IMG/VR virus record: IMGVR_UViG_3300045996_002337
Span: 248,001-312,000 of that record
Strand: one strand, 5' to 3'
DNA length: 64,000 nt
Made by a program: the position numbers and the translations under genes. The notes beneath the pieces were generated by a model. That model was not told the origin of the DNA. It saw only the letters and a program-made list of their open reading frames with translations, and ran no database searches. Within the stretch, counting starts at the first letter, position 1. Each line of letters starts with the position of its first letter. This document shows, one piece after another, positions 14,534 to 20,019 of the stretch.

Positions 14534-14618
14534 GATTAGCTCCTAATCAAGTTATAGGCAGTTCACGTCTATCGCAAACTGGCAGGTTTTTAGAGGACCC
14601 CGCTAACCTCATCTTACA

Positions 14619-15881
14619 TTATAGCATACCCTTATGAAGGCGTACATCCTTTGCTGAGGGACCATGAGATGTCAAGCAAACACGAATGCCCATTCGTGCC
14701 TCAATGATCGAAGGAAGTTCTGCCGTTAGGATTTCGTGAAGAACATCCTGCATAACCACACGCATCTTCTCGCCCATTTGGTCAAGACATGTGATCACAA
14801 TGAGCGGCTGGGCAATCGTGGTGCTGGAGACCTGAGCGTAACTTTTCGCACGATGCATGTCCAACGCGATGAAGCGCTGTAGGTTGTCAATATCCAGCGG
14901 TGCGTAACGAAGGGTGCCTTGCCATTCGTTGTGAACGTTTGTCTGATCGTTCAGGGGACGATCAGTGATCATCTTTCCTTCATGCAATAGAGCCCCATTA
15001 CCATGACGGGTGGTGTACGCCCGTGTCACGTAGATAGGTTTGACGTTGGTGTAACCACATTCGTTGGCGGCAGCGATGGAAGACGCTAGACCAGTAACAG
15101 AGCGGGTGACGTGCGGAAACTCACCAAAGAACTCGTCAAGCATCAGGCCTTGAGCACCCTCGACGATCATGCACTGACGAAAATCGTTGAAGACCTTCGG
15201 GTTTTCAAATCGTAGGAAGACGGCCATCCGACGAAGCTCGCCGGCGAGCTTCGTCGTGCTCAGATCAAACATGGAGAAGTAGAGCTGCGCCTTCGCTTGC
15301 ACATCTGCGCTGGCGTTCGTGAAGCTGGCCATAGAGAGCCCGTACTCGTGAAGCCGCTTCGGCACCCATTCCTTGCGAATGCGTTGGAGAATGTGCGCAA
15401 CTTCAAAGCCACTTGACCGTAGCATGTCGAGGGTGAGGAAGTGTCCTGCCTTGTGACGTGTCACGGTCTCGTTGATACCAAGCCCACATGAACCATGACG
15501 GTTGTCGCGTGCGAGCTCGGCAAGAGAATTGATCGCCATGTCGTAGATGGTTGTTACGCGGCAATCACGGTGGGCGTAGATGTCAGGACGGTGACCGAGC
15601 TTCTGAAGAGCGAGCAGCTCCTTCTTCAAGACTGGTGCGTTGAGAATGAAGTTCGACCCGAGGTAGGTGTTGGCTCCAGCAAATGTACCAGAGCCGACGT
15701 GACCGAACACATGACGCTTCTCGCCATCGACCACGGTGTGCCCCGCTTGAGCACCGCCATTGCCACGAGCAACTAGGGGTGGGACGCCTTGTTCTGTGAA
15801 CGCGCGGGTGAAGTAGTCCGTTGCCAAACCCTTACCCTCGTCTCCAAACCCGGCCCCAATGATGGCGATTGCAGTTGTCAT
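14619..15881 (-). CDS. Adenylosuccinate synthetase-like protein (divergent PurA family)
   Basis: GAGFGDEGKG, GGAQAGHT, EGAQG, FPHVTRS, TRHG motifs. Confidence 0.85.
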   Translation of the reverse strand: MTTAIAIIGAGFGDEGKGLATDYFTRAFTEQGVPPLVARGNGGAQAGHTVVDGEKRHVFGHVGSGTFAGANTYLGSNFILNAPVLKKELLALQKLGHRPDIYAHRDCRVTTIYDMAINSLAELARDNRHGSCGLGINETVTRHKAGHFLTLDMLRSSGFEVAHILQRIRKEWVPKRLHEYGLSMASFTNASADVQAKAQLYFSMFDLSTTKLAGELRRMAVFLRFENPKVFNDFRQCMIVEGAQGLMLDEFFGEFPHVTRSVTGLASSIAAANECGYTNVKPIYVTRAYTTRHGNGALLHEGKMITDRPLNDQTNVHNEWQGTLRYAPLDIDNLQRFIALDMHRAKSYAQVSSTTIAQPLIVITCLDQMGEKMRVVMQDVLHEILTAELPSIIEARMGIRVCLTSHGPSAKDVRLHKGML

Positions 15882-16132
15882 CCCAGATTCCTGGCCGCGA
15901 AGTGATTGAACACAATGACAGCGACTTCCATTTCCGGCGTAACACAGATCAAAGACCCTGAGTTACGTACGTGAAACAGAACTTCAGCGCCATCATCATG
16001 TTCAGCAGTTAGAGCCACGCGTCGATTTCGAGAATACGTTTCGAAGAGCTCTACGAACCCTTCCTCGTCAAACTCTTCGCTCATACTGGCAAACACGGTT
16101 TCCAACTGCTCTTGGGTAATGGTCATAGTCAT
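15878..16132 (-). CDS. Hypothetical protein
   Basis: Coupled ORF. Confidence 0.55.
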   Translation of the reverse strand: MTMTITQEQLETVFASMSEEFDEEGFVELFETYSRNRRVALTAEHDDGAEVLFHVRNSGSLICVTPEMEVAVIVFNHFAARNLG

Positions 16133-16158
16133 GGTTGATTATAACCTATCTTAAGCAG

Positions 16159-16413
16159 TTAGAACACCACTGCGCAGATCACCAAATCAGGATCGTCTAC
16201 CTCCAGATCCAACTCCTCAAGATCATCAGCGCGGTAGCACTCATCTCCATCGAAGTAATTGGTCTCATCACTTCCAGGCGGTGCGAAGTCGATGCCGTTC
16301 ATGTAGCGATAGCCGTTTCCTTCATCGTCCTTCTGGAGGACGATCAACGTTTCGTCAGGAATGCCCACAAGCATCGCCTTAAGATCTGCAACTGTAATCA
16401 TCTCAAACTCCAA
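16159..16413 (-). CDS. Acidic hypothetical protein (DDEGNGY motif)
   Basis: ORF, 84 aa. Confidence 0.6.
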   Translation of the reverse strand: MEFEMITVADLKAMLVGIPDETLIVLQKDDEGNGYRYMNGIDFAPPGSDETNYFDGDECYRADDLEELDLEVDDPDLVICAVVF

Positions 16414-17775: not shown

Positions 17776-18509
17776 CCCCTGAAAGGGCCGTTGCCGCTCT
17801 TCTTGCCGAAAGGGCTGTTGCCGCCCATCATCTGCATCATCATCATGGCTTGCATCATGTTGCCGTTGCCGCCTTCACCGCCGCCCATAGCGGACATCAG
17901 CATGATTGGCATCAGCTTTTCCATGTCGATGTTGCCTTCGCCGCCGCTCATGGCCGACATCTGCATCATCATCATGAGGTTGCTTTGCATACCGCCCAGG
18001 GCCTTGTCGCCGCCAGGAAGCATGGTCATCAACGAGCGAATCACCATGACACCGTTGTCGCCCATGCCGAGCAGCGAGACCTTCGGTGGCTTCCAAGTGG
18101 TGCGCTGACCGTCGACCTTCATCAGGACGAATTGGACGTTGGTGCGGTCTTCTTCAGTCGAACCACCAGCAGGCTTGCGCTTCGCAACGGTTGATCCAGT
18201 TGGCTTGACGCCGTACTTGATGTCAATCACCCAGCCTGGCTTTTCAGAAGCACCGAAGAAGATCAGATCTCCAACGTTGACGCTCGACACTGGCGTCGAC
18301 TGTGCGAACGCAGGAACTTCCATGCCGAACTGGTCGAACATGTTGATCTGGACTTCAGCGTCATCGCCGCTGCCAACGAGGGTGGAGATGCCTTCTTTCG
18401 AAGAGACACCAACACTGCCCGACATCAGGTCCCACACGACACCTTCGGCACGGCGGAAAAGGCGGTTCATCATCTTGTCACTGCCAGGGAATTGCATACC
18501 GTTCATCAT
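17772..18509 (-). CDS. Hypothetical protein with Met/Gly-rich C-terminus
   Basis: AAGGAG SD; MMMMMQM repeats. Confidence 0.75.
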   Translation of the reverse strand: MMNGMQFPGSDKMMNRLFRRAEGVVWDLMSGSVGVSSKEGISTLVGSGDDAEVQINMFDQFGMEVPAFAQSTPVSSVNVGDLIFFGASEKPGWVIDIKYGVKPTGSTVAKRKPAGGSTEEDRTNVQFVLMKVDGQRTTWKPPKVSLLGMGDNGVMVIRSLMTMLPGGDKALGGMQSNLMMMMQMSAMSGGEGNIDMEKLMPIMLMSAMGGGEGGNGNMMQAMMMMQMMGGNSPFGKKSGNGPFRG

Positions 18510-18558
18510 TTTCTCCTTAAGTTGTCTCGAAAGTTGAGAGGGCTTCGAGGCGTTGCCC

Positions 18559-19668
18559 TTAGTCCTTAATCATGCCGAGCATGGTGTCCAAGATCGCGTG
18601 GTGATCTTCGAACCAGTTTTGGCTGTTGGCCCGCGCTTCATGAATAGGCAACCAGAAAGCTTTTGCGGTTTCTACCACTGCTTTGCCACCCGTTTCATGA
18701 AGCGGTGCATTCTGTCCCTTGACCTTTGGTAGTGGTTTTGTGTCATCGAGTCGAATCAGAAAGGCGGTAGTGATGGTGCGTCCGCGGAGACTTCGATCAG
18801 GGTGATCAAAGATTTCCTTTGCACGAATCGAGCCACGCAGAATACCTTCTGGTACCTTGATGCCAGTTTCTTCAACCAGCTCACGAATCGCCGCGCTTTG
18901 AAGACGTTCACTTTGATCCACGAAGCCACCAGGCAGCGCCCACAGGCCTTTGCCTGGCAGAGCACCGCGCTCAACAACCAGCACGTGACCAGATTGAATC
19001 ACAACGTTATCAACCGTCACGAAGGTCGGAGCATACGGTGCCGCCTTCCAAGCCGACTTGTACTTCTCGATGAAGTCGTATTCATCTTGAAGCTGATCGT
19101 ACGCCTCAGATTCAAGAAACTTGACAAGGAGGAATTTGTACGTGACAGGCGGTACATCTTTCCACGCCGGAGGTGACATATCCCAAATGCTGCTGCGCTC
19201 GAAGAGGCGTCTGCGAAGAGCAGTAGCGCTGAGGTCGCGGCCTTCTGGCACCTTCGGCAGCAGATCGCTCTTCCACTGCGGGAACGCGGAGAGGTACCAG
19301 GTCGAGTCGTCTCGATCAGAGCCGGTCAGCCGAATTTCAACTTCATCACGTTTAAGCCGGGCTTCATCAATGGCACGATAGACCTGCTCTTGAACCGATT
19401 GAATCCACTTCGCGTCGTTGTACGGCTGATCAGCCAATGGGCAGACCTTAAAATGACCATCGTAGTTCGCGCCAACTTTCCAGCGCTGAATCAATAATTC
19501 GCGTTCCTCATACGTGAATGGATTCTTGATCGTGCGCGCTTGGTGCGCGGAACCTACGAGAACGACGACGAGGTCCGATTGAGCCAGTGCGTGCTCAAGA
19601 ACGTGGACGTGTCCGAGGTGGAGAGGTTGGAAGCGACCGATGTAGACGGTCACGATTTTGTTTGCCAT
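18559..19668 (-). CDS. nadM: Bifunctional NMN adenylyltransferase / Nudix ADP-ribose pyrophosphatase
   Basis: GRFQPLHLGH, NPFT, SAT, Nudix box GGF..E...AAIRELVEETG, FEDH. Confidence 0.95.
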   Translation of the reverse strand: MANKIVTVYIGRFQPLHLGHVHVLEHALAQSDLVVVLVGSAHQARTIKNPFTYEERELLIQRWKVGANYDGHFKVCPLADQPYNDAKWIQSVQEQVYRAIDEARLKRDEVEIRLTGSDRDDSTWYLSAFPQWKSDLLPKVPEGRDLSATALRRRLFERSSIWDMSPPAWKDVPPVTYKFLLVKFLESEAYDQLQDEYDFIEKYKSAWKAAPYAPTFVTVDNVVIQSGHVLVVERGALPGKGLWALPGGFVDQSERLQSAAIRELVEETGIKVPEGILRGSIRAKEIFDHPDRSLRGRTITTAFLIRLDDTKPLPKVKGQNAPLHETGGKAVVETAKAFWLPIHEARANSQNWFEDHHAILDTMLGMIKD

Positions 19669-20019
19669 ATCGAACTCCTCGAATAGCGGTTTGAAAGAGT
19701 AGGCGTCTATCGCTTACTCGACTTTATTTATTGTAACTCCTAGTAGAGGTACAATTAAATTGTTGTAGGTTGAACGATGTTGGCAGCCTTGAGCAATCGA
19801 CCACGACCATCTTGAGAGTGATACACGTAGAAGGTGACTTCCTCACCAATCTTTGGCCACTTGGAATAATCAATCCAAGTGGCGTATTGCACGCCATCTA
19901 TCGTCATCACCTGATTTCCCGCCCCTCCAAACGTAAGGTCGATTTTCTCGAGCTTACCCATGAGGTACTTCGGCGCAGCTGGCTTCGTGCTAAACAGATT
20001 TCGGAGGAAGTTGATCATG

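Follow-up and report, generated by a model that had tools for sequence, protein, structure and literature searches.

The question raised by this locus is whether two look-alike hairpins, lying about 5 kb apart in front of the NAD-salvage genes nadV and nadM of a phage genome of 349,660 bp, are copies of one regulatory RNA element. The original prediction, made from the letters of a 64,000-nucleotide stretch of this genome (hereafter the window), noticed that the two loops are identical while the stems differ but pair, and inferred a cis-regulatory RNA shared by the two genes, being either a protein operator or a metabolite-linked switch. We confirm the observation and the analysis supports this inference, although the choice between the two alternatives stays as the prediction left it. 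Both hairpins are present on the minus strand, which is the coding strand of both genes, and each is followed 10-14 nt later by a small hairpin that holds the Shine-Dalgarno (SD) sequence and ends at the start codon. The first hairpin (P1) ends 25 nt before the TTG start of nadV and 28 nt before the ATG start of nadM. The SD hairpin (P2) of nadV, which was also part of the prediction, is real, and nadM has an equivalent one that had not been mentioned. The features are listed in Table 1.

Table 1. Features of the nadV and nadM leaders and their genes, in window coordinates
Coordinates	Strand	Feature	Description	Support
14559-14581	-	P1, nadV leader	9-bp stem with two G-U pairs, loop AUAGA closed by G-C	Part of covariance-model hit 14528-14584 (42.1 bits, E 1e-6)
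14549-14558	-	Linker, nadV leader	G-free, single-stranded, between P1 and P2	
14534-14548	-	P2, nadV leader	6-bp hairpin with the SD GGAG at its tip (first G paired, GAG in the loop), ending at the start codon	
13133-14533	-	nadV	Nicotinamide phosphoribosyltransferase, TTG start directly after P2	Pfam PF04095 (NAPRTase) and PF18127 (NAMPT_N); start position matches relatives
19697-19719	-	P1, nadM leader	9-position stem with one A-C mismatch, loop AUAGA closed by G-C	Part of covariance-model hit 19663-19722 (42.0 bits)
19683-19696	-	Linker, nadM leader	G-poor, between P1 and P2	
19670-19682	-	P2, nadM leader	5-bp hairpin with the SD at its tip; the minimum-free-energy fold extends it to include the AUG	
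18559-19668	-	nadM	Bifunctional NMN adenylyltransferase / Nudix ADP-ribose pyrophosphatase (NadM-Nudix)	Pfam PF01467 (CTP_transf_like) and PF00293 (NUDIX)

We then ask whether two such copies could arise by chance. The 10-mer GCGATAGACG occurs exactly twice in the whole genome, both times here, which is only mildly unusual since about 0.7 copies are expected, and with one mismatch allowed the count in the window is not significant (6 against 3.25 expected). The sequence alone is therefore suggestive and not conclusive. Megablast of the region against cultured phages found nothing, and a fixed-stem DNA pattern searched in viral contigs gave only 6 hits, of which 2 were relevant, being too narrow. 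The comparison of NadV loci, however, shows that the motif is far beyond chance. In 72 viral loci that encode NadV, hairpins of the form G-AUAGA-C with stems of at least 7 bp occur 45 times on the coding strand and never on the other, while the 19 other orderings of the loop letters give 0-5 each. Of 53 such hairpins, 49 precede a NadM (26) or NadV (23) start, at a distance of 17-31 nt. This shows that the motif is strongly enriched before NAD genes elsewhere, whereas the link to prs suggested in the original prediction was not seen.

A covariance model finds only the two sites of Table 1 in the 350-kb phage genome. It also finds sites before nadM/nadV in cultured phages of Xanthomonas, Phaeobacter, Synechococcus and Ralstonia (the phages carrying the motif include MD18, B23, LucasX and RTH11), and in Methylococcales, Thiothrix, other Gamma- and Betaproteobacteria and cyanobacteria. 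Every hit checked in the bacterial loci and in further viral loci precedes NadM or NadV, except one before an SPFH-domain gene. In three of five whole bacterial genomes searched, the only hits were at the nadM/nadV locus, and two gave none. A scan of 151 genomes of one bacterial class at E up to 0.01 returned nothing, not even the known positive genome, showing that whole-genome power is too low for a 56-nt motif, and this result says nothing about absence. No conserved third gene was found near the motif in 80 bacterial loci, and three neighbours picked from loci with no motif or only a weak variant were an oxidoreductase, PheT and a GDSL lipase, but not NrtR. In Rfam 15 no hit was obtained at E up to 10, either for window positions 13000-21000 or for a bacterial copy, and the literature searched holds nothing like it, so that the motif is apparently undescribed.

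Both stems covary strongly. Of 14 pairs, 12 show compensatory changes, and on 85 hits 93.7% of cells pair, against 55% after shuffling and 30-49% after sliding, with a covariation score of 0.99 against 0.22. It should be noted that P1 examples were first selected for pairing with G-U allowed, which inflates the P1 pairing figures and the G-U count given below; P2, however, was not used to select the sequences and still covaries. Overall, the P1 stem can have any sequence and 5-13 bp, but its tip is nearly invariant, with a G-C closing pair and the loop A-N-A-G-A. The linker is 6-16 nt and once 31 nt, with 6% G across 85 examples, and Psychrobacter carries an inserted hairpin.

These results bear on whether the signal acts at the RNA or at the DNA level. 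A DNA-level signal, such as an operator for a transcription factor like NrtR, a hairpin promoter or a terminator, could be considered because NrtR regulates nadV and nadM operons in many bacteria (PMC2330246), the nadM P1 scores as terminator-like when read on the plus strand, and some bacterial copies are followed by a U-run. Nevertheless, the arms are not conserved but covary, the GT-N7-AC core of the NrtR operator is lacking, all 85 viral hits are on the sense strand, and G-U exceeds A-C by 53 to 12 in P1. In addition, in 12 of 84 cases the upstream co-directional ORF ends within 10 nt of P1 or overlaps it. The genes in this region are all read on the minus strand, and the terminator scan lists no minus-strand terminator at either site, with the nadV P1 followed by CCUAUAAC and the nadM P1 by CUUUC; many copies, including that of nadV here, have no U-run. 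A sigma-70 promoter scan found nothing convincing before either leader. A DNA-level signal is thus considered very unlikely.

Taken as an RNA, the element has the geometry of a protein-bound translational operator, with a conserved-loop hairpin at a short distance from the SD and start codon on the mRNA strand. We propose, with moderate confidence, that a sequence-specific trans-acting factor, most likely a protein, binds the P1 tip at the upstream edge of the ribosome's landing site, and that binding would either block the 30S subunit or lock P2, or open P2 as the Mu Com protein probably does on the mom mRNA. Because the same tip sits before both genes, the two enzymes of the nicotinamide-to-NAD route (phage pathway NARP2) would be switched together even when 5 kb apart. 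The translational level, the protein partner and the direction of control are inferred here. A search for RNA-seq runs found only two DNA metagenomes holding about 5% of the words, and no transcript ends are known. P2 in this phage is weak (-3.5 to -3.9 kcal/mol, an ordinary value), and SD-enclosing hairpins occur at about 12% of crude gene starts in the genome, so P2 alone cannot be a strong off-switch; on the other hand, this proportion does not make SD hairpins a general habit of this phage. A macromolecular partner is favoured by rare tip variants that are shared by both leaders of the same genome: C-A(C/G)AGA-G is in both leaders of three genomes, which lie in three separate NadV lineages, and A-N-C-G-A tips are in both leaders of four others, although this concordance could arise from gene conversion between the two leaders. 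The variable linker and the hairpin inserted in Psychrobacter also fit an independent binding hairpin better than a compact aptamer.

The factor is not identified. Since the motif is found in phages of cyanobacteria and of Alpha-, Beta- and Gammaproteobacteria and no third gene travels with it, the likeliest candidate is one of the two enzymes themselves, with NadM-Nudix as a weak lead, and occupancy by substrate or product (ADP-ribose, NMN, NAD) would set the response. In a test of protein-RNA co-variation, NadM position 236 was the only column separating A-N-C-G-A genomes from class 1, but 6% of random subsets do as well, and no NadM or NadV column tracks the class-2 tips. The raw association with the motif ranks NadM residues 236, 235 and 336 highest, while it is not significant in a phylogeny-aware test (7 independent pairs, p 0.25-0.6), and remains only a lead. 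We also reject, on the sequence, pairing of the loop with the SD, the linker or the 16S 3' end, since loop position 2 is free and no complement is conserved, and a link to the phage's own CUA-anticodon tRNAs through the UAG in the loop, since variants lack UAG and bacteria carry the motif.

Three other RNA-level explanations are considered less likely. The first is a minimal riboswitch, in which the bare RNA (the P1 tip, possibly together with the P2 tip or linker) binds nicotinamide, NMN, ADP-ribose, NAD, PRPP or another NAD-pathway metabolite and changes access to the SD without any protein. The very wide taxonomic spread without an accompanying gene is more typical of riboswitches than of protein-dependent leaders, the motif is tied strictly to two enzymes of one pathway, and the SD lies in the second hairpin as in many translational riboswitches. 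However, only about six conserved nucleotides lie in a 5-nt loop, with no internal loop, bulge or conserved pseudoknot partner, the freely varying stem and linker lengths make a fixed tertiary pocket unlikely, no conserved alternative pairing was seen in 85 examples, and the joint change of tip variants within a genome is not predicted by a fixed ligand. This explanation is unlikely on present evidence. Somewhat less probable still is an RNA processing or stability element, where P1 would be recognized by an endoribonuclease or would be a protective 5' hairpin setting the half-life of each cistron, as stable 5' hairpins may do for bacterial mRNAs. P1 often lies between cistrons of one operon, and may lie near the 5' end of the nadM transcript in the window, where weak promoter-like hexamers are seen by eye just upstream. 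Yet simple protection needs no invariant loop, the tight spacing to the start codon and the covarying SD hairpin point to translation initiation, and restriction to two genes of one pathway in very different genomes is not expected for a general RNase signal. The last is a constitutive translational enhancer or standby site, where P1 and the linker would give the 30S subunit a landing platform recognized by the ribosome itself and not regulated. The G-poor, unstructured linker next to a structured ribosome-binding site agrees with this, as does the presence of the motif in many hosts, the ribosome being the one universal partner. It does not explain, however, why only nadM and nadV use the motif or why tip variants change together within genomes, and no complementarity to the 16S 3' end is apparent; we regard it as the least likely of the three.

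NAD depletion is a main bacterial weapon against phages, and nadV plus nadM form NARP2, which rebuilds NAD, drains PRPP and was toxic in E. coli when its operon was cloned (bioRxiv 10.1101/2024.02.11.579819); how phages or bacteria dose this pathway is not addressed in the papers searched. This work defines a compact, portable control element of about 55 nt before both genes, occurring in phages of at least four host groups and in several bacterial orders, with culturable systems including Xanthomonas citri with phage LucasX, Phaeobacter inhibens DSM 17395 with MD18, Synechococcus with B23, and Thiothrix and Methylomonas strains. It gives a directly testable handle on the regulation of NAD salvage. 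If the partner proves to be one of the enzymes or a metabolite, it adds a new class of NAD-linked RNA control, and also a small part that could be borrowed for synthetic regulation. A possible but tentative reading is that the motif is a metabolite-responsive switch of a new kind, either the smallest NAD-pathway riboswitch yet, a pentaloop hairpin sensing nicotinamide, ADP-ribose or NMN, or an enzyme-RNA feedback loop in which NadM-Nudix or NadV binds the tip of its own and its partner's mRNA and is released by its substrates. In phages this would make NARP2 inducible by the products that NAD-depleting defence systems release, that is, a counter-defence triggered by the defence itself.

Finally, we compare the element with known systems. 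The NAD+-I (nadA motif) and NAD+-II (pnuC motif) riboswitches (PMC6859854, PMC7297122, PMC7749635) are likewise cis-acting leader RNAs before NAD-pathway genes, with translational control through the RBS. NAD-I has tandem bulged stem-loops with an ACANCCCC bulge before nadA in Acidobacteria, while P1 and P2 are plain hairpins without the bulge; NAD-II has an internal loop and an RBS pseudoknot before pnuC in Streptococcus, and neither the architecture nor the Rfam models match. The guanidine-II riboswitch (mini-ykkC) appears to offer a precedent for two small hairpins with a variable linker, conservation confined to the loops and closing pairs, and the SD in the second hairpin, but its loops are probably both ACGR and kiss each other, while the two loops here differ (ANAGA and the SD) and show no complementarity, and its Rfam model gives no hit. 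The lambda-type boxB hairpin bound by N protein probably also carries a purine-rich pentaloop on a short stem of arbitrary sequence, though its loop would begin with G (GAAGA or GAAAA), and it is probably paired with boxA and acts on transcription elongation at no fixed distance from a start codon. The NrtR regulon (PMC2330246) comprises the same genes (nadV, nadM, prs) and would logically respond to the same signal, ADP-ribose, NrtR itself being derived from an ADP-ribose pyrophosphatase like the Nudix half of NadM. NrtR binds a 21-bp DNA palindrome with conserved arms, while the element here has non-conserved covarying arms and an asymmetric conserved loop and is strand-specific, so it is RNA, and it may be an alternative to the NrtR repressor. 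Further comparisons are the E. coli thrS operator bound by ThrRS, the T4 gene 43 operator and phage Mu Com on the mom mRNA, in which a hairpin with a sequence-specific loop seems to lie immediately upstream of, or next to, a structured SD and start codon. In thrS and gene 43 the binder is probably the enzyme encoded downstream, and in Mu binding next to an inhibitory SD stem appears to open it. The loop sequence and size are unrelated to those of the present motif, whose single tip serves two different genes and is spread across phyla and phages.

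The 349,660-bp virus record represents a jumbo phage estimated to be 97% complete, with a G+C content of 51%. In the region of interest the genes run on the minus strand, and between nadV, which encodes nicotinamide phosphoribosyltransferase, and nadM, which encodes the bifunctional NMN adenylyltransferase / Nudix ADP-ribose pyrophosphatase, there lie a PurA/PurZ-like gene and four ORFs of unknown function. NadV together with an NMN adenylyltransferase constitutes the phage pathway NARP2, which rebuilds NAD against NAD-depleting defence systems (bioRxiv 10.1101/2024.02.11.579819). 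The PurA/PurZ-like gene, located directly upstream of the nadV leader, is an adenylosuccinate-synthetase homologue only distantly similar to solved PurA structures (E 1e-14), while its best PHROG hit (phrog_1211, E 4e-51) is annotated as '2-aminooxy adenylosuccinate synthetase'; it is thus possibly PurZ-like and may indicate 2-aminoadenine (Z-base) DNA. In addition, the phage encodes a tmRNA, which matches the Rfam betaproteobacterial tmRNA model (110.9 bits) and the permuted tmRNA model (129 bits) and for which ARAGORN predicts the tag peptide ANEANYRMAA, and this hints at a betaproteobacterial host. Two adjacent tRNA genes have the anticodon CUA, which reads the amber codon, and are labelled Pyl by ARAGORN only because of that anticodon; TAG ends 22 of 254 long open frames in the genome and is the rarest stop. 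The positions of these and other features are listed below.

Features discussed in the text; positions refer to the window (bases 248001-312000 of the record) except where a locus is named
Feature	Position	Strand	Remark
tRNA gene cluster	1-2364	-	11 genes: Pro x2, Leu, Thr, Cys, Ser x2, Ala x2, Tyr and Val
Two tRNA genes, anticodon CUA	10611-10769	-	
tmRNA	11276-11719	-	
nadV	13133-14533	-	
Adenylosuccinate-synthetase homologue	14619-15881	-	
nadM	18559-19668	-	
nadM P1 (first hairpin of the leader), read on the opposite strand	19697-19719	+	Terminator-like score
ORF resembling an ABC-transporter ATPase	22226-23011	-	phrog_293, E 4e-49
Motif copy downstream of nadV in locus L102 (gutless-worm Gamma 3 symbiont)	5990-6048 of L102	+	32.8 bits; before a 341-aa SPFH/Band 7 protein

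Both hairpins of the original prediction are confirmed in their places on the coding strand. The nadV copy has nine pairs, two of them G-U, and the nadM copy has nine positions with one A-C mismatch, while both have the loop AUAGA closed by G-C and both fold in this way in the minimum-free-energy structure of the leader. Each of them is followed, after 10-14 nt lacking or poor in G, by a second small hairpin (P2), which carries the Shine-Dalgarno (SD) sequence at its tip and ends at the start codon; the original prediction had recognised this for nadV only. The shared 10-mer occurs exactly twice in the whole 350-kb genome, both times here. However, about 0.7 copies are expected by chance and the one-mismatch count in the window is unremarkable, so that on the sequence alone the case was only suggestive.

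We then turned to comparative evidence. A pattern built from the two copies found six viral contigs, two of which had the match directly before NadV homologues of 45-56% identity, and in those contigs the nadM leaders carried the same loop on entirely different stems. Subsequently, 72 viral loci that encode NadV relatives were retrieved and scanned for AUAGA loops flanked by pairing. Overall, hairpins of the form G-AUAGA-C with at least seven pairs occur 45 times on the coding strand and never on the other strand, while the 19 other orderings of the same five loop letters give 0-5. Of 53 hairpins with at least five pairs, 26 precede NadM and 23 precede NadV, and all of these lie 17-31 nt from the start codon. 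An alignment of 42 distinct leaders gives a consensus of P1 (8 pairs) and P2 (6 pairs), in which 12 of the 14 pairs show double compensatory changes. The covariance model built from this alignment finds only the two known sites in the phage's own genome (E about 1e-6, with nothing else up to E 10), and finds 85 sites in the viral loci, all on the coding strand. On 85 model hits from phages and bacteria, 93.7% of cells form standard pairs, against 55% when partners are shuffled and 30-49% when they are slid, and the covariation score is 0.99 against 0.22. The P1 examples were first chosen for pairing, so their pairing figures are inflated; P2, however, was never a selection criterion and covaries as strongly. 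In detail, the P1 tip is the loop AUAGA closed by G-C in 69 of 85 hits, and the remainder are ACAGA, AAAGA, AGAGA and AACGA, so loop position 2 is free and the other positions are nearly fixed. The linker is 6-16 nt (once 31 nt) with only 6% G, and P2 closes on G-U or G-C around a GAG or GAU triloop, so the SD is partly paired.

The motif precedes nadM and nadV in the cultured Xanthomonas phages RTH11 and LucasX, Phaeobacter phage MD18 and Synechococcus phage B23, and Ralstonia phage RSP15 has a variant form. It was not found in phiCbK or in a KVP40-like vibriophage, while Ralstonia phage RsoM2USA and Xanthomonas phage X1 have only the SD hairpin. Actually, the motif is not confined to phages. 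Of 80 bacterial loci with the closest NadV relatives, about 30 carry it, including Methylococcales (among them Methylomonas and Crenothrix), Thiothrix, Marinicella, Pleionea, Sessilibacter, Rhodocyclaceae, a gutless-worm symbiont and two cyanobacteria, whereas the alphaproteobacterial loci (Hoeflea, Shinella, Methylocystis) lack it. Among the bacterial hits checked, every one precedes NadM or NadV, except a third, good copy in the gutless-worm symbiont before an SPFH-domain gene. Where nadM is not next to nadV, the distant nadM has its own copy in three of the five genomes checked. Of five whole bacterial genomes searched, three gave hits, and these were only at the nadM/nadV locus, while two gave none, although the genome-wide regulon in bacteria was thereby probed only weakly. 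On a NadV tree, the carriers are scattered through phage and bacterial branches. Two groups show additional elements. In three Marinicella loci (L132, L154 and L119), an extra G+C-rich palindrome (GTGGCAC...GTGCCAC within a longer TATA-flanked inverted repeat) lies about 10-35 nt upstream of P1 in both the nadM and nadV leaders, and may be a DNA operator or a further RNA hairpin layered on the motif. In the nadV leaders of four Psychrobacter loci (L135, L138, L141 and L099), P1 with the normal tip is followed by an inserted extra hairpin and then by the SD hairpin, showing that the spacing between P1 and P2 is not rigid.

The element acts as RNA and not as DNA, as judged from several lines of evidence. 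Besides the exclusive occurrence of hits on the sense strand, the arms are not conserved but covary, and G-U pairs outnumber A-C by 53 to 12 in P1, although part of this reflects how the examples were selected. In 12 of 84 cases the upstream ORF on the same strand ends within 10 nt of P1 or overlaps it, so the element lies inside a polycistronic message. The nadM P1 followed by T-rich sequence does score as an intrinsic-terminator-like site when read on the plus strand, but the genes in this stretch all run on the minus strand, and the score is probably a by-product of the A-rich sequence upstream of the leader. The fixed short distance to the start codon and the covarying SD hairpin point to translation initiation. 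P2 in this phage is weak, however, and SD-enclosing hairpins are not rare in the genome, so P2 alone is not a strong off-switch.

It is of interest that rare tip variants are shared by the two leaders of one genome. The closing pair is flipped to C...G in both leaders of L014, L033 and L068 (numbers denote loci), which lie in three separate NadV lineages, and A-N-C-G-A tips occur in both leaders of L009, L018, L020 and L031. Such concerted change at two separate sites argues for a co-evolving macromolecular partner rather than an unchanging metabolite, although gene conversion between the leaders is an alternative explanation. No third gene was found to accompany the motif, and it operates in phages of very different hosts; NadM or NadV itself is therefore the most economical candidate. 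In raw counts, motif carriers are distinguished best by three positions in the Nudix half of NadM (numbered as in the window): position 236 is A or S in 94% of carriers against 37% of others, position 235 is R or K in 90% against 41%, and position 336 is K or H in 86% against 28%. Residues 235 and 236 of the carriers stand before a PG.G loop, and genomes without the motif or with variant tips vary at these three positions. With only seven phylogenetically independent contrasts this association is not significant, and it is reported only as a lead. On the whole, we consider it highly probable that a functional, sense-strand, cis-regulatory RNA is shared by nadM and nadV. The specific model of a protein-bound translational operator, proposed without expression or transcript-end data, is about as likely as not; a direct riboswitch seems unlikely, and the remaining weight falls on a stability element, a constitutive enhancer or a DNA-level signal.

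Compared with known elements, Rfam 15 has no match at E up to 10, either for positions 13000-21000 of the window or for a bacterial copy, and full-text literature searches on nadV, nadM and the loop sequence found no description of such a motif. The NAD-I and NAD-II riboswitches have different architectures and gene contexts, and the NrtR operator is a 21-bp DNA palindrome with a GT-N7-AC core. The features observed here, namely a stem free in length and sequence, an invariant tip, and a variable linker that can even host an extra hairpin, fit a recognition hairpin for a sequence-specific partner, placed at the upstream edge of the 30S binding site, and in this respect the element appears to resemble the thrS, T4 gene 43 and Mu mom operators.
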